Origin: Mizuhopecten yessoensis
Lineage: Eukaryota
Length of the DNA: 64,000 nucleotides
Reading direction: 5' to 3'
NCBI RefSeq assembly: GCF_002113885.1
Contig: NW_018406970.1
Coordinates: 1,796,022-1,860,021 of the forward strand
Each line of letters starts with the position of its first letter. Positions within the stretch are counted from its first letter, which is position 1. Below, piece by piece: positions 10,801 to 61,597 of the stretch. A program made the position numbers and the translations under genes. The notes under the pieces are model-generated. The model worked only from the letters and a program-made list of their open reading frames with translations, was not told the DNA's origin and did not search any database.

Positions 10801-13315
10801 GGCTAGTAGGAAAAGTATGGAAGTCGAACTCTCCAAGAGTGAGGTAGTAGAGAAAATGAGTTCTGCAGAGTGTAGTTTGACAGACATTCCCTCCAGTAGT
10901 TCTGACTGTCAGATGTCAACAACAGAACCTGTAGCGGTTAATCCAGCATCAGAATCGTCGGCCAAAACTCAAATTGAAGGTGAGGCAGAAGTAAAAACTC
11001 CCACTGAAGATGAAATATCTGCTTCAGGAAAACCTGCAAGCGACGATGGCCCTGAAGCGGAGACTTCAGAGACTGAGTTACCTGGTGTAGTACCAGTCAA
11101 TGGTGGCCCTATGGCAGTTGACCCTTCCTCCGAGGCTCAAGTACCTGTTGCCATCCAAACACCTGCAGTGAATGGAGTACCAGAAGCAGTCAGCCTTCCC
11201 ATAGAGAACGGTGCGCCATCTGTTGAGAAGAGTCAGACAGAGTCGGGAATACTGGCCGACCCAGCCGCGGAGAGTCAGGTCGCCGAGGTTACACAGGAGG
11301 AGGTCAAGGAGCCTAGTAAAGATGACGGCTACATCTGTCAGTACTGCGACCGGGAATTCAGTGCGTCTGACCTGCTCGTCATGCATGAGATGCAGCATCT
11401 GATTGGAAACAACTTCAAGGTAAGGCATTCACAACAGTGTTAACATCTAGTCAGAACCTTGCTTAATTGATAATGTAAAGCCAAATTGTTTTACACTTGA
11501 GCAAGAGGGCAAATTAAACATTGTATGTAGATTTTAGAAGTTTTTATTTTGAAAATTCAACTACAAATTAATACTTTTTGAATTAGATGTGCCGACAAGC
11601 CTCGACCCAGATCAGAATATCTGAGTCTGATTAGTGAGCAATTTTTGTCTTAATCAAATTGTACTTGACAAACTCATAACTATATTGGCCATCAGCGCTA
11701 CTCCAAGGGGGATGCTCACATGTGCTCTCATATGCTAATAGCTATGTCACTGTACAACATGCAACTTTAATGTGCATAAAAATAAATATGTATGTCAGCT
11801 GCCAAATAGAAATCCTTTAGTATATAATAAATGCTCAAATCAATTTCAAATATTTTCAAAATGTTATACAAGATTTTAACTCGGTGTGTGATGCTTATTG
11901 TGTTATGTTAATTTGATGCTGACTTTAAAACTCTGATATATTTGGTATATTTCAGGACTACATGGTGGAAGGTCATGTGAGTATAACATGTCATGTGTAT
12001 TAATCACACATTAGGTAGCAGTATACAGTAGAGTATGTTGGCAATCTTTAATACTTCTTCATATGGCCAAATAAAATTAATTACTTGGTTCTCAGGCCAA
12101 TTTTTTTCAAAAGAGATGCGACAGGGCGGTATATTTTTTTTTCATTTTACATAGCAAAAACGAGACGAGGGCGATTTGTTTTCATTGTGTAGTTTGTAAA
12201 ATGTTCATTGTGGGCATTACCTTGTCTTTTTATAGTTGTGTAGAGACCCGTCATAGAGCAAGCCACCGTAAATCCCCCCACGATGTTCCAGACGAGAATC
12301 ACGAACCCCCCATTCCTTATTTGTACCGAAATGAGCGCCATTTGTACACAAGACTAATAAGTCATAATCATTTTAACGCTTGCCTGTATATCAATCATTA
12401 TCTTTATTCAAACGTTTTCGGGACTTGGGTGACTAACGAGTAAAAACGATATGCAGACCAATTTTCCGAATATTTTTAAAGACGCCGGCTGGCGCATTCA
12501 CAATTTTGTTTTTATTACTTTCACGATAAAATCGGCAATGCGGTGCCCTAAAAAAAATGTGCGCGGGCCTGAGAACCAAGTTATCAATTTTTGTTGGCCT
12601 AAACTATTCTAGTGGAATGAGTACATCCACTAAGGGACATAATGAGTATACATATTACCCATACCCTGATTGCCTTTAGTATTAGTGTTAACTGGCGAAA
12701 TGTCTCAATATTTTCGGACAGCTGACTTTACTGACTCAGCACACTGTGGCTTAGCGAGTTGTTTTCAGCGGTTTAGAGTCAAGACATAACGGACAATTGC
12801 GCACTTAACTTGACAAAGTAAACAGAGGTTTTCGAAAGCTCACAATACAAGTTTTCAATTACTGTTTGTGTTTAAAACAAACTGCATTAATTTCATGATT
12901 TCACATGTCTAGATAACATCAAAAACAATCTTGTTTTAATCGAAATGTTTCTGATGTACCGTATTATGTAATCTCGGAGTAGCATTCTTCTCTTAGACTT
13001 TTTATCGTAGAATTTTACAAAGTCAGTTCTTTTATTTAGTTTCAGACCAAGACTGAAAATTCAGAAGCAATGACAAATGGTGACAGCGAAAATGTTGAGG
13101 AAAAGGGCAGGATTGAAGAAGAAACGATAAAGGATGTTGTGGTCCAAAATGGAGAAGAAAAGTGTTCTCAAAACGGAGAAACGCCTGTAACGCCCGTACA
13201 AAATGGAGTGAAGGATAAAGTGACTGAGACACCAAAAGAAAGTGAGGGGTCTGGACTGGGTGAGGGAACAGACAACCATCTCATAGAGGAAAAACCGATG
13301 GAAACTGACCAGTAG
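4868..13315 (+). CDS. Large multi-C2H2 zinc-finger protein (~33 fingers, ~2282 aa; REST/SPR-4-like transcriptional regulator); exons 4868-11419, 11956-11976, 13040-13315
   Basis: 2191-aa ORF with ~33 CxxC...HxxxH fingers and an acceptor TTTTCAG just before the ATG (exon starts 4860). Donor AAG|GTAAGG at 11420 (phase 0), 21-nt exon DYMVEGH (CAG|...|GTGAGT), and a last exon in frame with the MTNGDSE...ETDQ* ORF. PLDLS CtBP motif at 6389-6403. Confidence 0.9.
12065..12599. mobile_element. MITE with GGCC-terminal TIRs (PIF/Harbinger-like) in zinc-finger gene intron
   Basis: GGCCAAATAAAATTAATTACTTGGTTCTCAGGCC and its inverted counterpart GGCCTGAGAACCAAGTTATCAATTTTTGTTGGCC; related copies at ~15724-16016 and ~20349-20800. 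Confidence 0.6.
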
Positions 13316-26879: not shown

Positions 26880-28391
26880 TTATCGCCTAGCTGACACGGC
26901 CACCTTGAAGTCCAACGGTTTCAGCGTAAGTCCGTATTTACTATCGATTACTGGTTCCTTTCCGGGAATGATTTCAAATAAACATTTTTGAATCATCGAC
27001 GAGAAAAACAAAAACAGTTCCATCCTTGCAAGTAATTCTCCTGGACACTTCCGCCTTCCTGCACCGAACGGGAGGAAAAGGTCCGCGGTGTTCTTGTCGA
27101 TATTTCCGTCACAATCTAGGAACCTGGTGGGGTCGAACTGACTGGGATTGTTGAACACTTCCGGGTCATGGTTCACGGACCAGAGATTGACGAAGACGAG
27201 GGTGTTTGCCCGGATGAAATGTCCGTCGAGGATCGTATCGCGAGTGGTGCTGTGTGGCAGTGCAAACGGAAATATACAAGAGTGGCGCAGAATCTCCAAC
27301 ATGCAGGCCTCTGTGTAGGGCAGAATATCAATATCATCAAACGACAATTGGCGATTGACACCGACCTTTTCCCGGATCTCTGCGTGCGCAGCTTCCTGAA
27401 CATCCGGATGTGTGGCCATGAACAGCACTGACCACTGTAAACTACTGGCGATGGTGTCGAACCCTGCGCCGATGAGTTCTTGAACTGTGGTGAGGATATG
27501 CTCGTCCGTAAGTCCCACAGCCTCCTTGTCCTCATCAGGGATGTCGTCCGTCGCCTTAATAAGAGCGTCCGTTATATCCCGCATGTGAGACGCGTCATAC
27601 GTGTCCAAATGTTCCTGTCGCTTTTTCAAGCTGAATTTGTTCATGGTTTCTAGGATACCGATGAACTTGTTGAATGAACTTTTCGTAAAGTGCCTCATCC
27701 ACGGCATAATATCTACTGGGTTTCCTGCCGCTGCAAACGCCATGAATTCGTCGTTCATCTTAACAAGATGTGTAAAATCTTCGTCATCTCGCTGATAACG
27801 TTTACCGAAACACAAAGCGCAGATGATGTTGCCAACCGACAGATAAATTTCGTTGTGAGGGTCGAAGGGGGCGCCCTCTGATCCAAGGAAATTGCTAGTC
27901 AGAACGTCCGCTTCCGACACAATAGCCATTTCTATGGGACTGTTTCGTTTATTGGTAAACAGGGCCAGCGAGTTCTGGGCGATACGACGATGCATTTTCC
28001 AGCGAGGCCCATAGTCTCCAAATCCCATACTCTTTCCATTTGCTATGAATTTGAAGGAATAAAAGTCAGGTCGGCCGGCGAAGTCTTCGGCCTGTTTGAT
28101 CATGGCCGATCGTATAGTTTTGAGACCGTTTAACACAATGGTCGGGGTAGTTCCCATCGTAATTTGGAACACATCCCCGTATGTAGCACGAAGTTCTGTC
28201 AAATATCTATGAGGCTTTTTACCGAGACTTACCAAATTCCCAATAAGAGGCCAAGGAAACGGCCCAGGCGCCGTGGAGGCCAACTTCCGGTTTTTTGAAG
28301 CCCAAATCAGCGACAAAGTAATCACACATCCGATCAAAACAAGCGGTGATATAGACAAATATCCGATCAGTGTTCCAGAAAAGTACGCCAT
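26880..28391 (-). CDS. Cytochrome P450, CYP1-like (clan 2), intronless, ~503 aa
   Basis: N-terminal TM anchor, PGPFPWPLIGNL proline motif, WxxxR (WKMHRR), I-helix GAGFDT, ExxR (EILR), FDPTRF, heme motif FLPFGAGRRKCPG. FAGRPDFYSF and LPHSTTRDT are typical of CYP1. First ATG is at 28391; the track start at 28430 is GTG. Confidence 0.93.
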   Translation of the reverse strand: MAYFSGTLIGYLSISPLVLIGCVITLSLIWASKNRKLASTAPGPFPWPLIGNLVSLGKKPHRYLTELRATYGDVFQITMGTTPTIVLNGLKTIRSAMIKQAEDFAGRPDFYSFKFIANGKSMGFGDYGPRWKMHRRIAQNSLALFTNKRNSPIEMAIVSEADVLTSNFLGSEGAPFDPHNEIYLSVGNIICALCFGKRYQRDDEDFTHLVKMNDEFMAFAAAGNPVDIMPWMRHFTKSSFNKFIGILETMNKFSLKKRQEHLDTYDASHMRDITDALIKATDDIPDEDKEAVGLTDEHILTTVQELIGAGFDTIASSLQWSVLFMATHPDVQEAAHAEIREKVGVNRQLSFDDIDILPYTEACMLEILRHSCIFPFALPHSTTRDTILDGHFIRANTLVFVNLWSVNHDPEVFNNPSQFDPTRFLDCDGNIDKNTADLFLPFGAGRRKCPGELLARMELFLFFSSMIQKCLFEIIPGKEPVIDSKYGLTLKPLDFKVAVSARR

Positions 28392-28690
28392 CTTGTTGCA
28401 CCAAAATAACCAGCAATTTAGAGAACACACTATCTTCTATGTATAACAATGTTTATGGACAATCGGTCCCAACACTAACATGGCGTCGACACTGATCGAG
28501 GACTGCGTTAACACTAAAGGCGACCGTGGCCGGAGTGGTGTCTCGTGTCTATGACCGAAAGGGCGGTCAGATGTAGCCATGACCTTGGTTCAAGCGTTAC
28601 ACAAGCGTCTGGTCAGGCTCCTCGCGTTCTGTGTCAGACATCCATTGTCCGGTGATCGCTTGAAGCTGTCAAAGGCGGCATTCCGGCCCA

Positions 28691-36729: not shown

Positions 36730-39700
36730 ATGGTAAGTCACGGTTGACGTTTTATTATTCCTTTAACGTTATTAATGAAATTCTAGACATTCCTGCCCGA
36801 GTAGACAATACTGTATCCATCGTGTTTAGAATCTGACAAGGGAGCAGATTGCACCTATATATATCCTGGCGTGAAGAGAGTAATATTGGGTGTGTTTAGA
36901 TCATTTCTTTTTGGTAAAATGGCAACACCTGTTATAGTATACAACATCCAAATAATATACCGTTATTCGGTGGGTGGGGGTGAAGATGAAATGACTAAAG
37001 GGGGGTGGGGGTGGGGGTGAAGATGAAATGATTAAAGGGGGGGGGGGGTGGGGGTGAAGATGAAATGACTAAAGGGGGGTGGGGGTGGGGGTGAAGATGA
37101 AATGATTAAAGGGGGGGGGGGGTGGGGGTGAAGATGAAATGACTAAAGGGGGGTGGGGGTGGGGGTGAAGATGAAATGATTAAAGGGGGGGGGGGGTGGG
37201 GGTGAAGATGAAATGATTAAAGGGGGGGGGGGGTGGGGGTGAAGATGAAATGACTAAAGGGGGGTGGGGGTGGGGGTGAAGATGAAATGATTAAAGGGGG
37301 GGGGGGGTGGGGGTGAAGATGAAATGACTAAAGGGTTTTGTCCGTAAAAACATGGAAGTCATTTATTTTTACTTTTGTAACAGAGGATATTATTTTATCA
37401 ATGACTCCGTTAGGAGTCGAACCCGGGACCTGTAATTAACTGGTCTGACGCCCTCCGAATGAGCTAAACAGAATCCACCGAAGATTTGTCAGTAAGAACT
37501 TCACGAAGCAGCTTCTATTTACACCAGAGTTACCTTTAGTAAGAAATAATTAACGATATTTTCTTTTGAAAATTGAAAGGATCCGTAAAAGGTATTAAAG
37601 ACATTGTATTATTTATATATTTGTTTTAGGTCTAAGTGAATAAAGTTCCCCACCTCCAAGAAAGAGAGCTCTTCACACGAGTTTTCCAGAGATAACAGCG
37701 TGGCTTGTCGGAGTATCGCAGAATATTTTTGTTAATATTTCCAGGGTCCCCATGTTAGTTGCTAATGTAACGGAGTTCAATATTTCCCGTCGGGTTTGAA
37801 CCCGGAACATTTGAATTACCAGTTTGATGCTCTGGCGATAATTCACCGCAGCCAAGTCGGTAGTAAACGTTTATAGAATAATTATGTTGTAAAGTTACAT
37901 ATTTCGTAAACTACTATTTCGGTTTGTTAAGTATATACCGTAAAAAAATCCAGAAATTCGGATACTTGTCCCAATGTAGGCTAAACACAGTAACCTCCCC
38001 TTAATGTCGTTATATTTTTCCATATATAACAGTAGTCTCGTTCAACCAGACTCTTGTTGCCACCGCAAGCTACGCCGAATAGAGAATTACAAGTGATCAA
38101 GCGTCTGGTTGAACGAGACTAATATAACAGTAGCGCGATTGGGCTTGTTCGTTGAAATGCGAAACAACCGGTTTGTCTGACGGACTTGCAAAATATTTAT
38201 GTAGGCCTTGCAAAGCTTTGTCAAGGCTTGCCTAGAAGGCAGTAGAAGCAGCATCAAATTACGTGGTTCGACCTTATTTCATAAACGAACAACTCTGGTC
38301 CAGCCGTTTGAATCGCGATAAACGAAAGCAGCCTATAATAGCTCAATGGGTTAGGGCGACGGTGTAACAGTTGGAAGTCATGGGTTTGAATCCATGGCCG
38401 TTCCTAATATTTTACACTAAAAATGCCGTTTTTTTTATATTTTATTTTTAATTGTTATTTTTTCATCTCTATTATTTTTAATAAAAGTTAAGGTATCGTT
38501 TTCTTGCCTGAACTGATTTTTCAAAGCGATAATCATGTCTAAAAATCAGTTTCTAATAAGTTTTAATATTATCTGTTGGTAATTTATTAGTCGACACTCA
38601 TTTTTATCTTGAAGAGTCGTGTTTCTGATCTTCCCCGATACAAACGGCACTAGTGAAACAAAAATACCAGAAGGAATGGAATTTACAAGGAGAAGGCAAT
38701 CGTGGCATGGGAAGTGTGAACATTAGAAAAGCAGAGTGTTATGAATAGTGGACAGTGCTACTAGTGCCGTCTGTGTCGGAGAAGATCACGACCACGCTAA
38801 ACTTAATTGAAAATATTAATTAATTTAAAAATTGCCATCTTGTATATATCTTTTATTATGTTATTGGGAAAGGGCTTTACATTAAAAATCCCTTTTGTAT
38901 ATTAGATGCAAATAAAAATATGTTTGAATCAATCAGTTTCCAACGCGTAGTTACATGTTTTTAGCAATATGGGAAAATATTCATGAACTCCCTTCCTATC
39001 ACATGACCAGTGTTCTCTTGTTTACTTCCTTCCTTAGCCTGGATCTCTACGTCACAGTCTTGTGTGGGCTGTGACATTGTGCCTGTCCATTGCTTCCGCG
39101 GTCTACATTCGACCTGTTGTTTTTCCGAACGGGACTGTAGGAGTCGAGGTCATAGAGACAGACGACAGAATAGTCACCCCCGGGGATGCCACTAATTCCG
39201 AGGGACAGGAAATCGACATGGAAGCTTTTGAGTTCCCGCTTACAAAACAAGATGTGGAGTGGCTAAGTTCCTTACTGCGCCTGCCGGAAACAGGCGAGTT
39301 ACGGATCAGGAAAGAGTACCGTGTCTTGACGGACGAAGAAAGGCGCGATTTCCACCAGGCACTTAATATTCTCAAAAATGATACGGTTAGTCATCCTTGA
39401 CATTTTAAGCAGGGAATAAAGTAAGGTATACATCCTCGATACTCTGGGAGTTATGCTCACTTTCGCTCTGTGCAGAGAGCGAATGTTAGCGTAACTCCAT
39501 CCTCGACATCCAGAGGTTACGCTCACCTTCGCTCAAGCGTAAGTGAGCGTAACCCCTGGAGTATCGAGAATGGCGTAACTCCTGGTATAGGGCATTCAAC
39601 GAAGGCTTCATACTTCAGAGTATTATAGGGAGTAGATGAAGACAGGTTTTTTGACATCTTGAAATATAAATGTTCTGGTGTGACGTCAGACATCTCTCAG

Positions 39701-42672
39701 TAAAATGTCAAAAGATTGTTGTTTTGGGCCAAACAGAACTTTGGATGGAAGTGATAACCTCGATATTATCTCCCGTTGCAATGGTGAACGTGAGAAACAT
39801 ACACGATCGCACATATACAATTTAGTAACATATATAACATGCCAAAAATGAATGACACTGCACCATATTACGGAAGCCCATTTGTGTCATGTCCTTGCGT
39901 CGTCATGAAAAGACGAGATGACGTAAATTTTAATTCTAGTTGTTGAGAAAAGACGAACAATGAGAATGAAGGTTTGCTAAGTCTGATCTTTACGTGGCGA
40001 ATCAGGCACCGTGCCATACAGCTGTTTCGTCCTGCAAGGACTCATCGGTGAGGCTGGGGAACCAAAATATATAAATCATAATTGGTCTAAACTGTTAAAA
40101 CAGACGGGGACGTGCATAAATCCCCTTAATCATATGAATTTATAAAAAGTGTATACATATTCCCGTAGTACTACCCACATCTCATCAGCAAGATGATTTC
40201 ATGTCAGTAAGACGCATATATTCGTTTCAATAAAACACATATCCTCGTCAATCAGACTTGCATTTCCGTTTTACCAACATCACATTTTCCTTCAATATAA
40301 CATTTGTGTTGCAGTCTGTGAGCCTCAACAAATATGATCTCTTGGCCAATATCCATTCTCGATCGTCTGCGAACAAAGCTGCGCACGCAGGCCCGGGATT
40401 CCTCGGATGGCACCGAGTTTTCTTACTGATGTAAGTGTGCATTCATTTTGAAAACATTCTTCAAAGTACTGAAAGTGACATTATACCTTCAATGTGTTAA
40501 GCATTGTGATAATTTATAATAATTTATAAAATAAATCCTATCTTTCAATTCAAATTACAATATACATGTATATATATTGTACAATATAAAAAAAAACTGC
40601 ATGTAACTGTAGTAAAATGTGATTATGAAAAAAAGTTGAATATTTTTTTTGATATATATTGTAAAAGTGGAAAATTTCGCGTCTTTTGTATTGAGCAAAT
40701 TAGCACGAACATATCTGCACGCGAATATTTATTAATATATTATAGATACATAGAATACAAAATGTTTATAGATTCCATAACCATTTGAAACGAAAATTCT
40801 AATACCACAAACAGTTTAAGAGTCGCAACGCGAACGTTTTCACCCGCGAAAAAATCCGCTTTTGCAGTATGTCCTCCGCTTCTACCACTGAACTAGTTTG
40901 ACTCTCTCATCCGTATATATGTATGCATGTCTGTTTGTTATGGGACCGTGCTTCCAATGGCGTCTTCTTACCCAGACACAGTTATTCTCCATTCCGGGTC
41001 ACTGGAATGAGCAATAAGGGTTAAAAAGGGTTTAAAAGATGCTTGCTAAATGACAAAATCCTTTGCGCCGACAGAGACCTCGAACGCAATGTACTATGAT
41101 CCCTGGCATTTAGGGAGAGATTGCAACAATCAATATGTTTTCGAAAATTTGGTCAACCTGCAGTCTATTAAATGAATCTCTGAAGATATTCATTATAAAA
41201 TATATTTTCCCATTTATTAATGCAGGCTTCATCACAATGCGCCTCAGGTTACGGATTGTATAGTATAAACTCGTAAGAGGCGACTTATATGACACCTTCA
41301 GCATCGTTTTCCTTCTTCTTTTTGTGCTGCTAACAGGACATCGAAGGAACAAGACCTGATCCGCTGACCTCATTACAACACTTGGAACCTTTTATCCTTC
41401 CTTTTATCTTCTGTCATTTTTTCACTTCCGTAGTTTGTCCCGTGGCACCCGTCTTCACAAACTCCAGCGAGTAATCTTCATTTCTCATTTGATTGGAAAA
41501 GACAAAAAATACACTGCGGTAATTTTTGCGCCGTTGCTTGTAAAATTAATATATTTATAAGTAATATGTATATTTTAAATATCTTCGGGACTAAATCTGG
41601 GGTAAATTAAACTGATCAATGATTGAACTTATTTGTTTATTTCAGGGTGGAGAACGCGCTGAGGCAGGCCTGTCCAAACGTAACCATACCGTATTGGGAT
41701 GTCACGCTTGACCAACGAATGGACAAGCCGTACCAGTCGGTCATCTGGTCTGGGGACTTTCTGGGAACAGGTCATGGTCCAGTGTTCGATGGTCCATTCA
41801 AGCACTGGGAAACTCCGTTTGACTTTGGCCACCTAGAGCGCCTTGTTTCGGCACAGGGACGCCTGCTTTCCGACGCGGACATCAAAAGGATCATGTCTCA
41901 GAAAAGGCTGGGTGAAATCAGTTATTTTTCTGCTAGCTCAAATACCAACTTAGAGGCGCTCCACAACAGAGTACATGTATGGGTTGGTGGTCAGATGAGA
42001 AAGATTGAAATAGGTGCATTCGATCCCATTTTTTATCTCCTCCATTCATTTGTTGACAAGATTTGGGAGGACTTCCGGTTACACCAGAGGACAGAAGGCG
42101 TCGATCCTCAAAAGGATTTTCCCGAGTTTTACGGGAGAGCAGGTCACGCTCCTCTAGCTCCTATGGGTTTAGGCAGTCTCGGTGTATTAGACGGTCTCAG
42201 TGACGTATGGGGTCACGGGGTGCAGTATCGACCACGACCCACGTGCAAAGCGACCACAACGAATTCCATCTGTGATTCTCCTTATCTTAAATGTAACTCC
42301 AAATATTTCTGTGTTTCTATTTCCAAAACCGATACCATGGTTTCTATTAGTACGTCAATTCAAGAGAAAGTTGAATCTGAAAACATGAGCAATCGGATCA
42401 CGATGAACCAAGAAAATCTGTCCGGTGGCAATAATTCGTCTACTTCCGGTACACGTATCTTTAACAATTCAAGAATTATTGATGAACACGAGCCCGAAAC
42501 TGTCAAAGATGTAAACAGCGGTAATACGTCACAGGGCACAATTAATATAACTGCACGTGATTACCACCGATACATACTCCAATTTAACATGTACACTGAT
42601 AAATTCCACTCATTAAGTCATCCATTACCTCACAACTACCAATATCCATCACTCGAAATATTCGACTTATAG
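36730..42672 (+). CDS. Secreted tyrosinase-like type-3 copper protein (~497 aa); exons 36730-36732, 39038-39385, 40315-40430, 41646-42672
   Basis: Signal peptide (LVWAVTLCLSIASA), RIRKEYRVLTDEER, CuA H..AH.GPGFLGWHR, IPYWD, CuB LHNRVHVWVGG..DPIFYLLHSFVDKIW and a Cys-rich CxxxxxxxxCDSPYLKC motif. Splice phases 0/0/2 are consistent. The ATG-only first exon is less certain. Confidence 0.88.
36970..37335. repeat. G-rich ~37-bp minisatellite (~10 copies) in tyrosinase intron 1
   Basis: Unit GGGGTGAAGATGAAATGA(C/T)TAAAGGGGGG(T/G)GGGGGTG. Confidence 0.92.
37376..37533 (-). mobile_element. Solo tRNA-containing LTR of the 269-777 family
   Basis: TGTAACAGAGG..TAGGAGTCGAACCCGGGACC..GAATGAGCTAAA..CCAGAGTTAC, with 4-bp TSD CTTT at 37372-37375 and 37534-37537 (terminal A lost). 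Confidence 0.7.
38033..38121. mobile_element. 89-bp Mutator-like MITE with 9-bp TSD
   Basis: TIR TAGTCTCGTTCAACCAGAC/GTCTGGTTGAACGAGACTA; TSD ATATAACAG at 38024-38032 and 38122-38130. Confidence 0.85.
39431..39590. mobile_element. Two nested Mutator-like MITEs (CATCCTCGA family) in tyrosinase intron 2
   Basis: Inner copy 39498-39572 is flanked by the 9-bp TSD GCGTAACTC inside the right TIR of an outer copy starting at 39431. Confidence 0.75.
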
Positions 42673-48904: not shown

Positions 48905-51900
48905 CTAGGATGAACTAGCACTGGCACAAGTAATGTCCAATTCGGATTCCACGCCACACTTGCTCATTCCGTTCAAGTTTTCTGTCTCCATTTCTGACCC
49001 GTCCCTCAATTCCAGTTCCTGTGCGCTGAGGAGCTCCTCAGCAACCTCAGAGTTTTGACGTACGAACAGCGTGATGCCTGCCTTGTAGGCCGCGGGGATG
49101 GTGATGTGGGAGGTTAGCTGGGCGCGATGTCGCGGGATCTGGTGTGACAGCGCTGTACATGCCTCACGTAGTACATTCACTACCTGACCTGTGAACACAA
49201 AAACACCATTTTAATAATCTTTCCATATGGACAATGAAACGTGTTCCAAAGGCTCATTGTAAGCTTAACTCATTCATCCCTGAAATTTCATAATGAATCA
49301 TTCCAACCTTTGAATTGGAAGAGTTAAAATGTGTCTTCAGGGGTGAATGAGTTAAACCCCTTTTTCTACTATTTCGAAAATTTAATTTAGAAAAGGATTT
49401 TTTTTTAGATTAAGGGTCCCCGTACCACTGCCAAAAAATGTAACTTCATATTGGAAACTGTTTTTGTGGCATGAGTTAAGCTCTGATAAATCTTCTCCGA
49501 ACCCCCCCCTCCCCCCATCTTTTGAGATTTTCATGAAATCTTAATAAATATGGAATGTACACAAAACAATAGTGTTCTGAGTGTAAAAATACAGCAGGGC
49601 TAAACCGAGATTTGAACACTGGACTCCAGATTGTTATACTGTACTGAAACTAGAATACTGACAGGACAGCAAGGGCCCCGCTGTATGCCTGACAGTGTAT
49701 CTCCCATATAAGCACCAAGCAAAAGCAAAAGTGATCATTGACTGTTCAGAAAGGATCATTTACAATAGTTTTTTGTTTAAAGTAACGACAACATTGACCT
49801 TTGAAACTTTTTAAAGACCTATTGCACATGTACCATCTTGTGAAATTTCAGAAAATTTGGCCTTTAGTCTGTAAGGGCCTTATATGATGTATTTTTGACT
49901 GTATATTCCCCATTCCGTTTTCAGTAACAGCGACATTAGGAATTTCTTAAACCACTATTGCACATCTGCATATAATTACAGTGTATCATCATGAGAAATT
50001 TCAGAAAGTTTGGCCTTCTGTAAGGCCCTTATCTGATGTCTTTTTGACTGTATATTCCTGGTTCTATTTTTAGTAACAGTGACCTTGATCTGGGAATTTT
50101 TCAAAACAATATTGCACATCTGCATATAATCACAATGTATCATCATAAGAAATTTCAGAAAGTCTGGCCTTCTGTAATAATGCACAACGACTCACTATTT
50201 ACAGACAAACATTTCAAAATTTTAGCCGACTTCAGACGAAGATTTGGAGGAGACTTACCAAGCACGTTCCATGTTTGCCAGCGTGTGTCTCTCTGCTTGA
50301 GGAAATCGTTGAGTGGAGCCCAGTCCCTAAACCTGTTGACCACATCTTGTCTTCTGACCAACAGAACTGAGTCGCTGGTCAACTGGTCCATAATTGTCTC
50401 TGCAGGAACAATCTCCAGTGGGTTGGTCAGATATACCCCTGTAGATGTCACAAACTCAGAATTAGTACATGTCATACCTTACCTAAAGTTAAAACCTAAA
50501 CTTTATTTATTTTACAACAATCATGAAACAAATTACTTCAACTTGTATTATTAATTCTTAATGGCCCGGTTGTAAGCGTGCAGGGGGTCATTAATTTTGG
50601 AGGAAACCAGAGTACCCGCAGAAAACCAATGCGCAGGTGACCCCATACCTTTTCACATCTGGTCTGGAAATCAAACCTACAGCTGCCTTGGTTAAATGCG
50701 AGTGGTGTTATCCACTGCGCCACGCAATTTGGAATATTTGAAAATCTTGATTCAAGAAATATGTGTTCATAAAAATATTTCTATACTGAATAACTGTAAC
50801 ATCTAGTCAAATTCTTCACAACTGAAAATTTGAAAATGTTGATGTTAAATTAAGTATATGGCATGTAATTTATAGTTAACTCCATATATTTGTCTAGTTC
50901 ACAAGCAAGATAGTGTTGCTTTCATTTTGTTAAGTTAGAATTACAATATTTTTTGCCAAGCAAAATATTCATCCAATGTTTTTACATTCTCTTTTGTTGA
51001 ATATAAACATTTTCAGACTATTTGTTTGCACCATGGTAAATCTATTAAGTGAATTGTTTATCATTTTAAAATAGAAAGTTTGAAATTTTGACTGAAAAGG
51101 TATTTTGGTACAACGTGAATAGTCTTTAACGATAACCTTTAAATTTCCATTTCATATGAAATGGAAACGAGTGTAAGATCATCCTCTTTATCACATAATC
51201 AAGATTTGTGGCATTTATTCGACAATTTTCATGCAACCTTGAAAAGCAAAAAGTTGTCCTTTTGACTCCAGTGCATAAGTCTGTGACGTCATGTACTTGT
51301 CCTAGGCGTGATGTTACACAAGTTGTCTCATCATCAAGAGTCAAACACATCGGCACACTGTGGTTCAAACGCTCAGGATCTCATTGCCTCTTAATATTAT
51401 TACTTTCTTTTTCATGTATTAGTTTCGGCTGCTTGACCAGTGGTCATTACCTTTTGAGCTGACTCCGTACACCATCTGGTGATGCCAGGCGTCCGGAATT
51501 GTCCATCCTGGCTTCACCCCGCGCTGCAGGTTCAGAGTGGCGATGGGAACCGCGCCTACAGCATCAAAAACATTATGGTGAAGCAAGTATTGCAAAATCC
51601 ACTTTAACATAAATACACTGAAGATAATAACAAATATTGTAATACTTCAACGAAGTTTCAACTCATCTGCAATAAACATTTGAGGATTTGAATTTAAATG
51701 TTAGCAGTTTAGACATAGTTCCCTCCCCTGTATGAGATTTGTGTTTGATCATCACAGGGAATTGTCTGCAGGTAAATGACAAATGGTTTGTCCTTTTTCA
51801 GTTTCATTTTTCTTCGAACAATATTATATAAACGATACTTTGACTATTTTCCTACCACTGTGAAGACATAAAGGACTCTTAATCAGATTTCTAATCTGAA

Positions 51901-54900
51901 TTCACAATTTTTATAATGCCATACATTGTACATATAGAGATTCCTAAACCAGTGATAGATGGTCATCATGTTAATCTAATTTCATACTTGAGTTAGTGAA
52001 TCTTGAAATTTATTTGAAAATTAACTAACAATAGTTAGATAAAATTAGTCATCATGAGTTTAGGGACCTGTTTCTTCCATAACGTTCGTATTTTATCTGG
52101 AAAAAAATATACATTTTTCTTTTTTTAAATGTGGTAATGGTAAACCACACATTTACCAATTATCTTCAAACTCTTTGTTTTCAAAATAAACTTTGGAAAT
52201 TCTTTAATATAAAATCTCTCACTTTACATGAGTAAGGTCATATAATAACGTTAACTTTACTGTCTAACAATTATGAAACAAATTATATCGACTCATATTA
52301 ATCACTCCTGTTGGCCCAGATGTTAGCGCACAGGAGGTCTTAATGTTAAAAGAAACTTGGGGAATCCCCACGTGGTCAGGCAGGCGACCCAATACCTTTT
52401 GCATGTCGATTGCATTGGGAACCAAACCCCAGCCATTTTGGTAAAAAGTGAGTGCGCTTTCCACTGCATCATTGGACCACTCACTTAGGAATTATTAAAA
52501 CATACAGATTCGTTGATGCCATATGGAACTCAAGTCGACCAGATAGCGGGGCCCGTATTCATGAAATCGTTCTCATGCTCAAGCATGGATTCTGTGCTCA
52601 AGCCAGCTTTCTTGTAACCCACCTAAATCATGTCAACGATCAAAAAGTCAAATTTAAATATTGAAAACAGTATTCAGCTTCTAGTTTCTTCATTTTTTGT
52701 CCAAAACTTTAACAAAATAAGGATTTTTTGAATAATTTATAACTGGAACAAGAAATTAGACTGGAGCACAAAATCCAGGCTTGAGCACGAGAACGGTTTC
52801 ATGAATACGGGCCCAGGTTGTGTGGACTCGATATGACATCAGCTGTATATACTGAATGCGAAAATTGTATCCTTGGCTGGTACAAAGCCACCAAAAACAC
52901 TTAGAACAAAACAGTTACCTTTCTTCAACCAGTAGCCAAGCCACTTGAGGAGCTCCACTTTGCGTGGCGGGTAGAAACTGAAGAAGCGGCCACGGATGAC
53001 TCCCTTCGTTAACTTTTCCACTCCTTCCAGTAGATTCTCAGCTGTTGTGCCTAGAATACAACACATTTTTAAACAACAACTGCCATAATGTTTACATTTT
53101 ACTGCAGAAATGTTACATTTATAAGATTGATATAATCCTCCCTCACCCCGGGGGTAAAACAAAACTAGAAATTTGTCAGAATGACATGAAAGTCACCCCA
53201 TCATTCTGTATGATCATTGCCCGATAAATCATTGACCAAGCTACAACTGATAAATTTTGACATGTCAATCAAAATGGTAAACAATGACCAGGTGTAAATA
53301 GTTCAGCTAGCCATGCCAACACATGGAATTAATAAGAAAGCATGTGGCAAATATAACGTTAGCGTTGACCAACACCTTAAATACGGGGAGATCTGCGCGC
53401 TGATACGCATACGGTCACCTGGCATGGGCAGATCAGGTAATTGGAATATAACGATGTTTATTTCACAACAATAAGTTTCAGAAAAGATTCATATATACGG
53501 ATAAATCTTTTACTTTTTTTTGTAATGAAATATACTTTTCCAAGTAGTTTTCTGATCGTCTGCAAATCCGACTGAATCGGTCATCGATATCGAGGAGTGT
53601 GTACCACTTAAAGGCAGTCACTCAAACAGTTCCGACGAGGACCACCAACATCAGAATTCGCGAGACATGAAGAACACCAAACAATTGTGATTTCAGCAAT
53701 TCTCCTTTGAAAAGAAAACATCGGAATGTATTTGGCTGTTTTGAACCCGTTAATATTTATTTTTCAAACTCAAACTTTTATCATTATCTGTTCAAGTCGC
53801 ATGGATGTCACCTTGTAAATTCCTGCCAGTTAATAGTATCACGCGATCTGCACTCTTTGCGGTACACAACTTGCCAACTTCGCCATTTTACCCATGTCGT
53901 TTTGACACATACCCAAGAACGACATTTTAACCCCAGAGTGCTAAATATGATGCAATTCTTCGTTATGTTTCCCCAAACGTGGTATTTATCAATTCACAAC
54001 GCAACGTCCTGAACAGTTGGGCCTAAGTTTACTCGGGTTTGTTTATTCGATTCAATCGTATAATATGACTTAAACTTGCACCTTTCGTAATTGTTAAATT
54101 AGCAATGCAATCAGGGTTTTATTCAACGAAATTGAGCAGTTTATTGCTGCGAGCATATTTCAAAACATTTCTGAAAATCCTCGAAAAATTTAAGATGAAT
54201 GGTCGCGATCAAGGACTGGTTTTGGATTGTTTTTGAGTATCGTGTACACCCTTTTCTTGACACTTCATTTTTCCTTAAAAAAGTGTGCACTTTACGCAAA
54301 TATTAACGGTAGTCGTTGGTCAGACATAAAATATCTAAATCAGTCAATAGCAATTTATAATATGACAGTTTACTCCCTTCTTGAACCTCAAATGTTCCTG
54401 ATTCATACTCGGAACATCTTTAGGTTATATATAATATATATATGTAATTCCCGTGTGAAATTTGGAACGCCTTTAGGTTTTATGATATTTCCGACAGAAG
54501 CAAGCTCTCAACAGCGCAAGGCAACAGAGGTCAAAATCTGGGACTGAAACCGAAATTAATAGTCCCCACTGTTGTCATGCTTCAATGCCTTGTTGACATA
54601 TGATGTCATGCAATTGTCATGACTGAGAAAATGTGGATATGCCTGTCCAGAGTAAGAAAAAAAATTCTGTCTAAATAAATAAACAAAAAGGCTTCTGTTG
54701 CCCAGTGAGCATTGACACGTTCACTTACCTGTGGCAGATCTAGAGAAGAGGTAGTAAGGTTTACTTACCTGTGGCAGATCTGGAGAAGAGGTAGTAAGGT
54801 TAACTTACCTGCAGCAGATCTAGAGAAGAGGTAGTAAGGTTAACTTACCTGTGGCAGATCTGGAGAAGAGGTAGTAAGTTTAACTTTCCTGCGGCAGATC

Positions 54901-57900
54901 TAGAGAAGAGGTAGTAAGGTTTACTTACCTGCGGCAGATCTAGAGAAGAGGTAGTATGGTATGGGTGCTCCCTCCATCCTTAAGTTGGCCAGGATGGTCT
55001 TACAGATTTCCTCCTTGTCTACTTGACAATCAAACGCTTTCTGTCAAAGTGAAACACAACCATTAATGTAGCTAGCTAGAGATCAAAAGGAAACAAGGAC
55101 ATTTGCTCCGAAATATTCCTACCAACTCAAAATGTTTTATCAGAACATAACACCAACAGCACACTTAGGCAGAATTTTCCAAACTGGAAGCTGTTAAGGC
55201 TTTTCTCTCATACTGTTACAGTGATCTGGAATGTATTATGTCTCAATGTCAATTTCAAATGGGGCTGCGGTGGCCGAGTGGTTATGACGTCGGACTGTCT
55301 ACGATCATTATCCCTCCACCAGTGGGTTGCGGGCATGAGGCCTATGTGGTGGGAGGGGTCAATTTTGGCTATTTTGGTTTTCCACCCCATAACCTGTCAC
55401 ATCCTTAAATGACAATAGCTGTTAATAGGACGTACAAACAAACAATCCAAACTTTTAAAAATGTTAACGGAAATTTTCTATTGGTTTCTATTTGGTTTTT
55501 TCACTTGATGGAAAAAATAACCTTAACATTTTTCACATGATCAAAGTTGTTCCACCATTTTGTAAAGCAGTTTGTTTAATCTGAATTTCCTAAAAACAAA
55601 CACCTACATAAACGACCAATTGTTCTAATCTATCCATCGCGAACCTGATCCAAATATAGTGGGAATCAATATTGTGCAGACACTAGTAATATTATACTCA
55701 CCATGACGTTGAGTACTGCCGTGGGACCACATGCCGAGGTGCCAATCTGTTTGACTTGTAGGACGTACGCCTCGTATTCGTTCCAGATCATCACCTTTTC
55801 TATGTGACAGTGAGGTTTGTTACCTCGCCGACGGCGCTGTTCACACTTAGGCAGAACCTTCAAACAATTTATTTATTTGTATTAATGATAGCGCATCAAC
55901 AAACAAGAGGCCCATTGGGCCTTCATCCCTCACCCGTTTCTTAAGGCACATGATGAACCACACAAGTTGAAATGTTTCTACCAAACTGAGACCATGATCG
56001 CCACCTAAGATTTCTTACTACCTGGTAACCCAAAGAATTAAAATCAGATGTATTCTTTCAAGTTTCGCCTGTTTTCGAATGGGTTGTGCCAATGCTCCAT
56101 ACCAAATTAGGTCAAAATCTTTCCACCACCAAGATAAACTCCCATTTACACTTTTGGGAATGGTTCTACCCCATCATACCCAACATTATTGCACATGGGA
56201 TGCTCGATGCCAAATTAACTCAGAACTTGAAATTCCCGGGACTGTAGTACACTGTCTAAAGCCGGACTTTCCAATCTCAAATTATGTCTAAACCATGCAA
56301 AGAATCTTGCTCCAACAATAACAATGTAATGTAAATACACTCTCCACAATTTGTAGCCATTTAAAAAGAAAATTTCATGCAGAATGCTGTGCCATCAAGT
56401 CATAGCTCACTTGGGTCTTTGGACCAGATGAGCTAAAGCGAAATTAGGAAATAGCGAATAATGAATAATGAATAATGAAGCTGCGCACGCATCTCATGTG
56501 GTCCCCCAGTACCAAACAGATGTGAATGACAGAATTAGGATCTGAATTGATATCTCTACAGCCAAACCTTGAAATTCCAATTATCTCCCTTGAACATATC
56601 GTACATTACTGTCAAACATCAATTGCTTTGAACAGTGTGTTTAATCATAATGGAAAGTCGTGTTGTACCAGACTATGATAACTTGCATTTGTTGTCAGGC
56701 CATATTCGTGTGAAGTTCTACAGAAAAGTGAATTATCATATATAAATCTAAATTTGCATCCCCCCCCCCCCCGTGCCCATGGCCACTTCACGAAAATATT
56801 ATGTACCCCATCTCCTCCAAGAAAAAGAGTATGTGTCTTCCCTTCCTTCCCAGAAATTTAAGTACGTACCCTGGCCACATTGTCAGCCGATTTATTCATG
56901 ACTTCTTCCTTGACCACATGTAGACTGTTATCCCCCATCAACAGGGGCTCCAGGCACTCATTGATCTCCTCGTAGATTGGCTCGTCAGAACTCTCCCTAC
57001 ACAACCAATCAAATGTGGTATAAGTAAACTGGCTCGTCAGAACTCTCCCTACACAACCAATCAAATGTGGTATAAGTAAACTGTAACCTCATCGAGATTC
57101 CTTTTTGTAGTCTTAATAAACATACAAGAGGCCCAATGGGCCTGCATCGCTCACCTGTTATTAATCTAACACTTGTAATCTTAAGATTTCATAAGAACCT
57201 ATAAAAGATTTAAACATGACGCCTCTGACCTTGATTGTCGAACAAGGACATTAGGTTGAAAGTGGATGAAGGTCATTCATTTGAACTAACATGGTAGTCC
57301 TTCATCCCAGCATGCTACAGGCCCAATTTCAGTACCCTGGCCCTTTTGCTTATTGAAAAGAAGTCGCTTGAAGATTTTACGACATTTGACCCCTGTGACC
57401 TTGAAAGTTGGTCAAGGTCATTCAGTTGAACAAACTTGATAGTCCTTCATCCCAGCATGCTACAGGCCCAATATCAGTACCCTGGGCCTTTTGGTTATTG
57501 AGAAGNNNNNNNNNNNNNNNNNNNNNNNNNNNNNNNNNNNNNNNNNNNNNNNNNNNNNNNNNNNNNNNNNNNNNNNNNNNNNNNNNNNNNNNNNNNNNNN
57601 NNNNNNNNNNNNNNNNNNNNNNNNNNNNNNNNNNNNNNNNNNNNNNNNNNNNNNNNNNNNNNNNNNNNNNNNNNNNNNNNNNNNNNNNNNNNNNNNNNNN
57701 NNNNNNNNNNNNNNNNNNNNNNNNNNNNNNNNNNNNNNNNNNNNNNNNNNNNNNNNNNNNNNNNNNNNNNNNNNNNNNNNNNNNNNNNNNNNNNNNNNNN
57801 NNNNNNNNNNNNNNNNNNNNNNNNNNNNNNNNNNNNNNNNNNNNNNNNNNNNNNNNNNNNNNNNNNNNNNNNNNNNNNNNNNNNNNNNNNNNNNNNNNNN

Positions 57901-60900
57901 NNNNNNNNNNNNNNNNNNNNNNNNNNNNNNNNNNNNNNNNNNNNNNNNNNNNNNNNNNNNNNNNNNNNNNNNNNNNNNNNNNNNNNNNNNNNNNNNNNNN
58001 NNNNNNNNNNNNNNNNNNNNNNNNNNNNNNNNNNNNNNNNNNNNNNNNNNNNNNNNNNNNNNNNNNNNNNNNNNNNNNNNNNNNNNNNNNNNNNNNNNNN
58101 NNNNNNNNNNNNNNNNNNNNNNNNNNNNNNNNNNNNNNNNNNNNNNNNNNNNNNNNNNNNNNNNNNNNNNNNNNNNNNNNNNNNNNNNNNNNNNNNNNNN
58201 NNNNNNNNNNNNNNNNNNNNNNNNNNNNNNNNNNNNNNNNNNNNNNNNNNNNNNNNNNNNNNNNNNNNNNNNNNNNNNATCTCAGCATGCTACTGGCTAA
58301 ATATCATCACCCTGAGCATTTTGGTTATTCAGAAGAAGTTGTTTAAAGGTTTTTTAATACAATTGACCCCTGTGACCTTGAATATAATTGAAGGTCATTC
58401 ATTTGAACAAACTTGGTAGCCCTTCATCCAAGCATGCTACTGGCCAAATATCATCTCCCTGGGCATTTTGGTTATTGAGAAGAAGATGTTTAAAGTTTTT
58501 GACATATTTGACCCCTGTGACCTTGAAAAAAGGTGAAGGTCATTAATTTTAACAAAATTTGTAGCCCTTCATCCAAGTTTGCTTCTGGCCAAATATTGAC
58601 ACCCTAGGCCTTTTGGTTATTAAGAAGAAGTCGTTCAAAGTAAAATATTGACGCCGGACGGACGCCGGACGCCGCGCTACGGCATAAGCTCACTTGGCAC
58701 TTCGTGCCAGGTGAACTAATAATGATGGCTTGCCTTAAATTTGGAGAATGGTATATATTTCATTATAAGGACGTTTATAAATTATAACCAATGAATTTGT
58801 ATGTAAACCTATTTTTCTTAGAAGTACTCTAAACCTATGAAGGTGAATACAACATGACCTACATGTATGTAGGGATTATATATATATATATATATATCAT
58901 ATCTAAAGAAGTAGTCTGCAGATTTTTAAACAAACTGCGAACATGACCCATATTTCTTTATTAATACTGAAAAGTTATGTACTAGCCCAGTGATTATTGT
59001 AGAAGTTTTTTCAAGCGATTATTCCTAAGCAGCTTTTTCAAAACTTTGATAAGTCTCATTAATTACAAAGATATTCATAAATTATAATGGGTTCAACTTC
59101 TCATCAAAAAGTTGGGTAGTCCTACAAACAAGCACGAGTCCAAGATTCAAATATCCGAGTCCCAAAAATCACTGCTAGACTAAATGTATACGTAATGACC
59201 ATACCCTGAGGATTCCTCCAGTTTGGGTGGTAGCTGCATTATGACAGCATTCTGTAGGGCGTGCGTGAGATTCTCCAGGTCCCCCATGTACATACATTCC
59301 GTGTTGCTGTTCTGGGGTGCATGGTTCTCCTGCCCCTCCAAGTTGGAAGCCACATCTCTCATGAAACTCTGGGAGACATTTTCCTCCTCGTCCGAGGATC
59401 CCGACGATAACCTGTTTTCCCTGTCCATGGCGGCTTTGTAGAAAACCTTTTCCCGACGATTGCTGGCGGAATTCTGAAAGTTTGCACCGGGTACCTTATC
59501 CTGTTTGCATAAATCTGGGTTACAGTAGGTGTGAAAATTTTCATTATCAACGTGAAGATGTGGATCATACCTCTCCATATTGTTGTCGAAGTCGTCAAAA
59601 TCAGTGCAGCATCTATCGTAGTTGAGATTATTAGTGAGGGAAGCTGCCCCCTCTGCCAGCATTTCCTCACAGCTGTTAGCCAGAGACGCCTGATGAACAC
59701 TATCACAGTTGTTGGGATAGCAACGTCCATCAGACAAAAATGGGGTTAGAATCTCGGCATCTCTGACAAAGGAAAAGGACTGGTGAAGTCCTGCAGATCC
59801 CGGAAGATCAGAGTCCACAAATTCTAGAAAGTCGGTCTCCGGCGAGTACACAACGGATGAGTCGGACTCTATTTGACCTCCAACCTCACTTCCACTCTCA
59901 CTTTTACCTGTACAACTGTCCAACCTGGACAATGGCTTGGTCTTACAGTCGTGATCACTGTCTTTTGAACAGACATGATTGGACAATCTATCACAGAGCT
60001 TTAAATCACTTGGAGAATCATCTAAAAACAGAACTCTACTTTCACTTTCATCTTCCCTGTGTCCATTCGCTTTTCCTTCGTGAAATGGTAAAGGCTCATC
60101 TTTGGGGACAGGCAATTCATTTCTATCTTCCTCTCGCTCTGAAAAATCAGGAATACGAGGTTCTGCATTTACCCCATACCCCTCATCCTCATCAGACGAG
60201 GTAGAGGAGGAACTTGTGGAACTACAGGCGAACAGTAGTCGACTGGCTTGAGATGGAAAATCGGTGTCAATGTAGTCACCGATCTCGTCTAAACTGTCAT
60301 TGCTAGCAGGGCGTGGAAGCTGTTGAATTTGTGCATTTGGTAAGAACGGCATAAAAGGTGATCTCATTTCGGATTCAGGTTTTGGCATATTTTCTTCACA
60401 CGAGATGTTGTTCATCTCTACAACTTGTGAAGCGAATTGACCGTGACTAGTTTGGGACTGGGAATATCTACACATAGCATTACCACATGAACAATAGTCA
60501 AGATTATCACAGAGAAAATCATCAGGGTTAAAATTAGAGTCCGACCCACTTGACAGGGAAGATCCTCCACTGTCCTCTGGCACCGCAAGTGGGGCTAGGA
60601 TACAATCACTCTTTACCATCAATACAGGATCAAAGGGAGGGCACTGCCCACTTCCTGTGGATGAGGTCTTCGACTCGTTGCTGTCTGTACTTTCACTACT
60701 CGGCACAGTTCCATTGACGATGCACTCAGGTTTGGCGATGCCATCTTTGTTGCATCTTGAACTGCTCTTAGACGAGAATGGCCTGGTCCATTCCTGTGCC
60801 GAGTCTGTTGTTTCGCAGACTAAATGTAAATTCCAGTTAGTTCCCCCACTGGATGACTTCGGTGCCTGTGATTTGGTACTTGTTTTTGAGTCTTCTGCTG

Positions 60901-61597
60901 GCACTGGAACAATATCATCCAGATCTTCCTCGGAACTAGAATACATTTCTGGGTATAAATATGCCTCCCCTCGACTTTGGTCTCGGATATTGTTTTGTTT
61001 TTTGTTTCTCTCTTTTTTGTCCTTTCTCTGTTTGACCAATCGACTCCAGGAGATAGTTTTCGGCCTAACTGCTTGGCAGCCCTTTGACCCCTGATCCTCC
61101 ATTCCCCCATTTCCAATGACAAATCCGTTCAGTGTTTTAATATCATCTGAACTTCCGATAGTACATCCAGTTCCATTGCTGTTCCCCATGGCTTCCTCGG
61201 CCATGGAATCTACTTCCCCATTGCAGATTGCTTTTATTTTTTCATTTCCAGAATCTAAACTCTGATTTCCATTTGATCTAAGGCTTGGAATATCAAAATC
61301 TGAGTACAAGTGATCATTATGACACGATGTTGCTATGGCAGGTGGAATTGAAGTCGCGGGACTATCGTCGCTTTTTGTTGGAGTGTGGTTTAGTTGCCTG
61401 TTGTTGTTATCCGGTTGTTTGGTTGTAGTACCATCTGTACCTACATCAGTGCCTTCAACGGTCATTGTTTTACTTCTTGCACCATTGCTTTGCTGCAGCT
61501 GTACCCTCAAGCCGACCACAGGCACAGATACTGAAACACTGTTCTTGACCTCTTCAGATTCAATGGCTATTACATGGCTGGTCTCTCCAGTCGCCAT
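48905..61597 (-). CDS. Uncharacterised ~1162-aa protein: long acidic/Ser-rich disordered N-terminus plus C-terminal papain-like (peptidase C39/phytochelatin synthase-like) domain; exons 61597-59205, 56996-56870, 55857-55702, 55040-54929, 53050-52919, 51555-51451, 50438-50259, 49188-48905
   Basis: Eight exons join with GT-AG sites and consistent phases (2,0,0,1,1,1,1). Motifs QIGTSACGPTAVLNV, DAWHHQMVYGV and VYLTNP. A probable upstream exon ends at 62811. Confidence 0.85.
49265..49355. mobile_element. ~90-bp TTAA-flanked MITE (family 2)
   Basis: Copy of 17248-17338. Confidence 0.8.
49740..50175. repeat. ~3 diverged ~145-155-bp tandem units (intronic, probably HINE-related)
   Basis: Recurring ATTGCACATCTGCATATAAT..ATCATGAGAAATTTCAGAAAGTTTGGCC..CTGTAAGG. 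Confidence 0.6.
50545..50724 (-). mobile_element. tRNA-derived SINE
   Basis: Homologous to 19975-20162. Confidence 0.65.
52297..52482 (-). mobile_element. tRNA-derived SINE (diverged)
   Basis: Homologous to 19975-20162. Confidence 0.6.
52548..52814. mobile_element. MITE with GGGCCCGTATTCATGAAA TIRs (PIF/Harbinger-like)
   Basis: Long inverted termini; left arm homologous to ~24345-24430. Confidence 0.75.
54723..54957. repeat. 6 x 40-bp tandem repeat spanning an exon 3' end and its splice donor
   Basis: ACTTACCTGYRGCAGATCTRGAGAAGAGGTAGTAAGGTT at 54723, 54763, 54803, 54843, 54883 and 54923. Confidence 0.92.
55261..55448 (+). mobile_element. tRNA-derived SINE (Meta-like)
   Basis: A-box head GGTGGCCGAGTGGTTA and tail TAAATGAC.ATAGCTGTTAATAGGACGT-(ACAA)n. 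Confidence 0.6.
55902..56436 (-). mobile_element. Short HINE/Helentron-type element
   Basis: AACAAGAGGCCCATTGGGCC at the left end and AGCTCACTTGGGTC..GACCAGATGAGCTAA at the right end. Confidence 0.7.
57124..58719 (-). mobile_element. HINE/Helentron-type element, inverted relative of 22821-24156, containing the assembly gap
   Basis: Reverse-complement match of both termini and of the ~145-bp unit. Confidence 0.85.
57506..58278. other. Assembly gap (773 N)
   Basis: Run of N within a tandem-repeat array. Confidence 1.

Follow-up and report, generated by a model that had tools for sequence, protein, structure and literature searches.

LOC110453389 of the scallop Mizuhopecten yessoensis: a predicted papain-like enzyme domain founding an unnamed animal family

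Which kind of protein is encoded by a row of small minus-strand exons in a 64,000-nucleotide stretch of the Mizuhopecten yessoensis genome (contig NW_018406970.1, positions 1,796,022 to 1,860,021; here called the window)? A reading of the letters alone (the sequence-only reading) had joined six of these exons into an enzyme domain of papain-like type, preceded by a long disordered arm. The gene is LOC110453389, with 8 coding exons and a product, P0001, of 1162 amino acids (aa). Its C-terminal domain of approximately 270 aa is supported as the founder of an unnamed animal family and a new branch of a well-known fold.

The arm query, a minus-strand open frame of 805 aa at 59180-61597, recovered the deposited protein P0001, 'uncharacterized protein LOC110453389', at 100% identity, and also orthologues from Pecten, Ylistrum, Mytilus and Saccostrea. 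A tblastn search of the window with P0001 placed eight exons on the minus strand. The coding exons total 3489 nucleotides (nt), that is 1162 codons plus the stop, and the introns are GT..AG throughout. The spliced model used here is the deposited protein P0001, and the exons were searched singly by reference. The exons are as follows.

Exon 1, coding part, 59205..61597, minus strand, aa 1-798: acidic, Ser-rich disordered arm; ATG at 61597, GT donor; tblastn identity 100%.
Exon 2, 56870..56996, minus strand, aa 798-840: end of the arm, with an EPIYEEI motif at 56980-56963 that is conserved in molluscs.
Exon 3, 55702..55857, minus strand, aa 841-892: Gln877 (55749-55747) and Cys883 (55731-55729), the latter at the start of the catalytic helix.
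Exon 4, 54929..55040, minus strand, aa 893-930: helical portion of the domain.
Exon 5, 52919..53050, minus strand, aa 930-974: placed by tblastn and transcript contigs.
Exon 6, 51451..51555, minus strand, aa 974-1009: Asn982 (51532-51530), Trp997, His998 (51484-51482) and His999 (51481-51479).
Exon 7, 50259..50438, minus strand, aa 1009-1069: Asn1014-Pro1015 in the hairpin after the His strand, with the Asn at 50424-50422.
Exon 8, 48905..49188, minus strand, aa 1069-1162 and stop (48907-48905): final two strands of the core, then an acidic tail that is disordered.

The six small exons of the sequence-only reading, with the peptides quoted from them, are all present on the minus strand as separate open stretches and in P0001, and the range given for them, 48905-55857, is exactly exons 3 to 8. 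Approximately 90% of the words sampled from exon 1 were present in twenty public runs. Contigs from four runs of four studies (X1, X2, X3 and X6), which carry their RNA label by guess ('RNA?'), were aligned to positions 50200-55900; since these contigs are free of introns, they must be transcripts. Exons 3-7 are joined in them at 55702/55040, 54929/53050, 52919/51555 and 51451/50438, and the junction ends read CT..AC on the plus strand, equal to GT..AG for the gene. The four junctions between the catalytic exons, on which the sequence-only reading depended, are therefore seen in spliced contigs from four runs and four studies. The junction-bearing contigs are single and 3.9-4.05 kilobases long in three runs (X1, X3, X6), with two shorter ones in X2. 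The junction positions within the contigs leave enough sequence on either side to hold exons 1-2 (upstream) and exon 8 (downstream), and the full model fits. LOC110453389 is single copy in the scallop assembly, and a genome search found no scallop paralogues of the domain.

Several repeats touch the splice sites of this gene. A 40-base-pair (bp) unit, repeated 6.1 times at 54719-54960, reproduces the final ~30 nt of exon 4 along with the GT donor of that exon (CAG/GTAAGT). The intron after exon 4 consequently opens with five additional donor regions, one of which carries a mutation; in the transcript contigs, splicing takes place at the first donor, next to the exon. At 56978-57083 a perfect tandem duplication of 52 bp includes the exon 2 acceptor and the first ~19 nt of that exon, which creates a decoy acceptor 52 nt upstream of exon 2 whose use would shift the frame. 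Intron 1 contains a run of N at ~57491-58285 and, adjoining it, a 145-bp tandem repeat at 58284-58641.

The AlphaFold2 model of aa 850-1140, built with an alignment of 74 homologues, has a predicted local distance difference test score (pLDDT) of 94.8 and a predicted template-modelling score (pTM) of 0.91; 849 is added to model numbering to give P0001 numbering. The model supports a papain-like (clan CA) fold for the C-terminal domain. The top Foldseek matches in the Protein Data Bank (PDB) were C39-like and double-glycine peptidases, the CdiA-CT papain-like toxin, ComA, PCAT1 and Alr0975 (E 2e-4 to 3e-3). In the exhaustive structural comparison the best match was LahT150, a C39 double-glycine peptidase (Z 15.0, root-mean-square deviation [rmsd] 2.2 Å over 133 residues). 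It was followed by 22oc (Z 14.7), an undescribed entry named 'P210 CD lyase', for which a literature search on the P210 lyase found nothing, and then by PeiR (Z 14.4), PCAT1 (Z 14.2), ComA (Z 13.8), the phytochelatin synthase Alr0975 (Z 13.5, 163 residues aligned), the Bacillus C39-like protein 3erv (Z 12.6), UfSP2 (Z 11.8) and staphopain (Z 11.7); calpain, cathepsins and other papain relatives rank below staphopain. In total, 45 chains matched at a Z of at least 8, nearly all of them papain-fold enzymes. These best matches are the papain-fold group that had been named from the letters alone, the C39 peptidases and phytochelatin synthase among them. Helical inserts, at model residues 52-94 and 172-234, bring the domain to approximately twice the size of a C39 core.

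In the model, Cys34 (Cys883) opens helix 34-45 and Gln28 (Gln877) stands six residues ahead of it. Trp148-His149-His150 (Trp997-His998-His999) open strand 148-157, and Asn165-Pro166 (Asn1014-Pro1015) lie in the hairpin after the His strand. Among 189 homologues, Gln877 is conserved in 178, Cys883 in 182, His998 in 184 and His999 in 185, and residue 1014 is Asn in 182 and Asp in 3. Gln, Cys, His and Asn are thus found in papain order, as had been proposed, and are kept in 94-98% of the homologues. With all four present in scallop (Gln877, Cys883, His998, Asn1014), the claim of an intact cysteine enzyme domain holds, and the domain is probably catalytic. In papain and ComA the Gln-to-Cys spacing is 6 and the His-to-third-residue spacing is 16. 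His998 and Asn1014 are likewise 16 residues apart, which makes the first His of the pair the more likely catalytic base, possibly replaced in that role by His999. The His in papain order claimed earlier is real, with His998 the more likely choice within the pair. The sequence-only reading had also noted Asn in place of the usual Asp; the Asn is there, and it is no oddity but the rule of the family and the state of the third triad residue in papain itself. Position 890 (Cys+7) is split near-evenly between Asn (92) and Asp (96) in the same 189 proteins.

Among 1.84 billion representatives, a profile of the domain matched 670 clusters at E<=1e-3, of which 446 reach E<=1e-10, so the catalytic motifs are not a product of chance; a second homologue search gave 534 domain-sized proteins. 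Bivalve sequences agree at 75-92% of positions over the C-terminal 330 aa, against 34-39% over the arm when scallop is compared with mussel or oyster. Scallop and fishes share ~45% identity across the whole domain. The long forms, which have an N-terminal arm and measure ~570-1480 aa where the models are full-length, were found in bivalves, gastropods, a cephalopod, annelids, a brachiopod, a nemertean and crustaceans. Short forms (~260-350 aa) were found in corals, sea urchins, a starfish, an acorn worm and amphioxus and, among vertebrates, in lampreys, sharks, many ray-finned fishes including zebrafish (LOC100332351), coelacanth and lungfish. A search with the lungfish protein ranked the coelacanth first (77%), followed by bichir, sturgeon, sharks and then teleosts down to 56%. 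No tetrapod was found among the best 120 matches to this protein or in the other homologue searches. An orthologue from a tetrapod, if similar in length, would be expected high in the ranking for a lungfish query, and the family was therefore probably lost in tetrapods. Two homologues from short metagenomic contigs carry additional parts, a histone-deacetylase fragment upstream of the domain in P0103 and leucine-rich repeats downstream of it in P0126; each is either a fusion or a merged model, and both were set aside.

The sequence-only reading could assign no named family, and the same result was obtained by profile searches. P0001 matches no Pfam family at threshold. Among the 74 members, nine gave sub-threshold matches to Peptidase_C39_2 at E<=1 (best 17.3 bits against a cut-off of 24) and nine to Phytochelatin (best E 0.0032). 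Searched at E<=0.1, the scallop genome gave no match to Peptidase C39 and C39_2 (PF03412, PF13529), and the Cys-His-Asp triad of C39 is replaced in the family by one ending in Asn, with the counts given above. ACTMAP-like_C (PF21646) was not among the 25 families, of 29, that were listed for the 74 members at E<=1. In a feature search of a protein atlas the nearest named families, after the family's own unnamed clusters, were ACTMAP-like_C, BIVM, DUF6885, phytochelatin synthase and C39. The atlas clusters of the scallop enzyme family carry no Pfam 38.1 family, whereas those of BIVM and ACTMAP have one. A 2023 survey of papain-like enzymes places BIVM, C19orf54 (ACTMAP), GUCD1 and UfSP2 in one cluster (I), and the parts of that survey available to us do not describe a family like that of LOC110453389 (PMC10318531). 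Six LOC identifiers of the family were tried, and no mention of them was found in the literature searched.

The arm (aa 1-850) has an isoelectric point of 4.5, 13.8% Ser and a net charge of -68, in agreement with the acidic, Ser-rich N-terminus of ~800 aa described from the letters. Its highest Kyte-Doolittle mean over 19 residues is 1.2 and no hydrophobic segment is present, so the long form has neither a signal peptide nor a membrane helix; the lack of a signal peptide had been read correctly. The short forms checked likewise have hydrophilic N-termini and no signal peptide, and higher hydropathy there belongs to the first residues of the domain itself. In an AlphaFold2 model of aa 708-1162 the arm portion (aa 708-853) has a pLDDT of ~33 and does not dock on the domain, with no sign resembling a pro-peptide. 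The disordered arm is thus real in scallop, but it is not a trait of the family, since among the sampled forms only protostomes carry it (~300-1050 aa long); the sampled cnidarian and deuterostome forms are without an arm. Short islands within the arm are conserved. GD[FY]I[DE]xD[FL]P, at aa 440-448 in scallop (GDYIDTDFP, 60254-60280), has two invariant Asp and extends from molluscs to a shrimp. Other islands conserved among the long forms are SPETDF, NFQN..SN..EKVF and SSDEEEN. EPIYE[ED]I (aa 803-809) is shared by bivalves, gastropods and a cephalopod, and is similar to the Src-family SH2 target pYEEI. Such motifs probably recruit partners or substrates, and the protostome arm is probably a regulated docking platform.

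The most likely role, to which we give a probability of roughly 60%, is that of a specific hydrolase, a cysteine peptidase or isopeptidase of the cytosol or nucleus that acts on a narrow range of substrates. This type of activity is favoured because its nearest neighbours by structure and features, the C39 double-glycine peptidases, UfSP and ACTMAP (PMC13367750, PMC13557074), are hydrolases of narrow specificity, which cleave behind small residues or trim short pieces from the N-terminus. The thiolate of Cys883, at the N-terminus of its helix, would be activated by His998 and attack the carbonyl of the substrate, which Gln877 and the Cys883 backbone would polarise as the oxyanion hole. Asn1014, on the next strand of the hairpin, would orient His998, the general base at the start of the beta-strand. 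The outcome would be cleavage of a peptide or isopeptide bond in a few intracellular proteins, of the maturation or ubiquitin-like-protein (Ubl) type and distinct from bulk degradation. In protostomes the arm motifs would guide the domain; in the sampled cnidarian and deuterostome forms the domain would act by itself.

Several observations weigh against a specific hydrolase, and three other roles were considered. Asn982 and Trp997 (189 of 189) and Gln984 (188 of 189) are all kept more strictly than Cys883, which is missing from 7 of the 189. The co-location of the triad is suggested by secondary-structure positions and by superposition with C39 peptidases. The named homologues are nearly all 'uncharacterized' or 'hypothetical'; the exceptions are the UniRef label 'Ubiquitinyl hydrolase 1' on one snail protein and two labels of apparently merged or mis-annotated gene models. 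The fold and triad also serve transpeptidases and acyltransferases, as in Alr0975, CtaG (Z 9.0) and CcbD (Z 7.8). A transpeptidase or acyltransferase, in which an amine acceptor would resolve the Cys883 acyl-enzyme in the manner of phytochelatin synthase or of the amide-forming enzymes of BtrH/CtaG type, is the strongest competitor, though an unlikely one. Phytochelatin synthase transfers gamma-Glu-Cys from glutathione. The Z-scores of Alr0975, CtaG and CcbD agree with such a role, as do the length of the Alr0975 alignment, the longest of all, its Foldseek template-modelling score by query, the highest (0.41-0.42), and the weak Phytochelatin matches of nine members. Every one of those matches is, however, under the Pfam cut-off, hydrolases lead the structural matches in both Z and rmsd, and the spacing from His to the third residue is 16 against the 18 known for phytochelatin synthase. 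Scallop also has a phytochelatin synthase elsewhere (289 bits), so LOC110453389 need not fill that role.

A broad-specificity intracellular cysteine protease of general turnover, like staphopain or the cathepsins, appears improbable. Staphopains, streptopain, cathepsins and Der p 1 do match the model at Z 8-12, but the closest neighbours by Z are narrow-specificity enzymes, and the very high conservation across the domain surface suits a specific partner. P0001 moreover has no signal peptide and no pro-region, its arm is undocked in the AlphaFold2 model, and unregulated activity of this kind would do harm in the cytosol. A non-catalytic scaffold, that is a pseudoenzyme keeping the fold for binding alone, is very improbable for the scallop protein: it possesses all four catalytic residues, and across Cnidaria and Bilateria 94-98% of members conserve these positions. 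The seven homologues without Cys, some of which also lack the His or the Asn, indicate that inactive relatives may exist.

Orphan papain-fold enzymes whose triads are intact have proved to be in charge of individual processing steps of importance; ACTMAP had no name before 2022, by the reference list of PMC13557074. The family points to an unrecognised step of protein processing or deconjugation in most aquatic animals. Zebrafish LOC100332351 makes this step directly testable, and the loss in tetrapods is a clear evolutionary question. The absence of the family from Pfam and the literature is likely explained by its apparent lack in humans, mice and other tetrapods. A wider proposal, offered tentatively, is that this is an ancient unrecognised animal family of dedicated cysteine proteases of the protein-maturation or Ubl type, a functional sister of ACTMAP with a substrate of its own, extending from cnidarians to lungfish, lost at the origin of tetrapods and steered by the arm in protostomes.

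Other matches obtained in the searches were rejected. A PYROXD1 match (E 0.005) lies mostly in intronic read-through of the open frame 50158-50478 and is spurious, and exon-by-exon searches of Pfam and of PDB sequences gave nothing useful. The sole match of domain profile A1 against PDB sequences was OtDUB (E 0.25), a CE-clan enzyme; it is a chance likeness to Q-x5-C-G-P, because in the CE clan the His precedes the Cys. Domain profile A2 had no match in PDB sequences, and NCBIfam gave weak RseA matches alone, far under the cut-off. Kinship to the ubiquitin C-terminal hydrolases (UCH, C12) was suspected from motif spacing and dropped: PF00443 matched 1 of the 74 members (E 0.043), and no UCH is found in the best 50 structural matches.

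Elsewhere in the window the following features were seen.

1373-3538, both strands: long tandem array with repetitive frames (ETSSLRLFLQVGNMYYQSF... units), in a region of 27-35% G+C.
4868-11443, plus strand: single frame of 2191 aa, a multi-C2H2 zinc-finger protein with a weak, sub-threshold finger of ZNF462 type.
26880-28430, minus strand: uninterrupted cytochrome P450 frame of 516 aa (E 2e-113).
41623-42672, plus strand, perhaps with 39062-39400: frame with a tyrosinase central domain (E 3e-23).

Among known systems, the C39 peptidases (LahT150, ComA and PCAT1; PF03412, PF13529) are structurally the closest, with an rmsd of ~2.1-2.2 Å over 130-134 residues. The order of Gln, Cys, His and third residue and the spacings of 6 and 16, for ComA the generally known values, are common to both, and the weak C39_2 matches fall on the Gln..Cys motif of the scallop family. 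Unlike these peptidases, the scallop domain has Asn for Asp and ~130 extra residues in helical inserts, and the enzyme is of animal origin and cytosolic, without an ATP-binding cassette (ABC) transporter. We know of no bacteriocin-type substrate in animals. Phytochelatin synthase (Alr0975, PF05023, MEROPS C83) shares the order of the triad, and the weak profile matches in nine members point to the same likeness, but the scallop enzyme has Asn for Asp, no Phytochelatin_C domain and scores below the Pfam cut-off. The scallop phytochelatin synthase frame mentioned above is located at G000:C4983:285377-285988 (minus strand) and runs uninterrupted for 231 aa over the whole profile; it is apparently intronless, and is either a native gene or a contaminant. 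BIVM (PF28452) has an atlas feature score of 0.93 and is likewise uncharacterised; the literature search found nothing on it as a protease beyond the 2023 classification paper. By comparison of cluster labels, PF28452 is present in 91% of the members of the BIVM clusters and the scallop-family clusters are without a Pfam 38.1 family; fish members of the scallop family are named 'uncharacterized', not BIVM. The cluster labels thus point, indirectly, away from membership of BIVM. The Ubl-specific proteases UfSP1/UfSP2 and ZUFSP are cytosolic animal enzymes that cut after Gly-Gly. They match at Z 10-11.8 over ~145-150 residues, below the C39 group and with no signal at the sequence level, and no Ubl-binding elements were identified in the scallop enzyme. 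ACTMAP (C19orf54, actin maturation protease, PF21646) comes first among the named families of the atlas feature search, with a score of 0.94. Scallop has a separate ACTMAP-like gene at G000:C5311:282913-287561 (plus strand; L001-L003) with three PF21646 exon matches (45.5 and 38.2 bits among them), in contrast to the members of the present family, for which PF21646 is not among the families listed. ACTMAP itself, a C39-like cysteine protease of the animal cytosol, is dedicated to one substrate (PMC13367750, PMC13557074), and by analogy it may be the model for the role of the scallop enzyme family.

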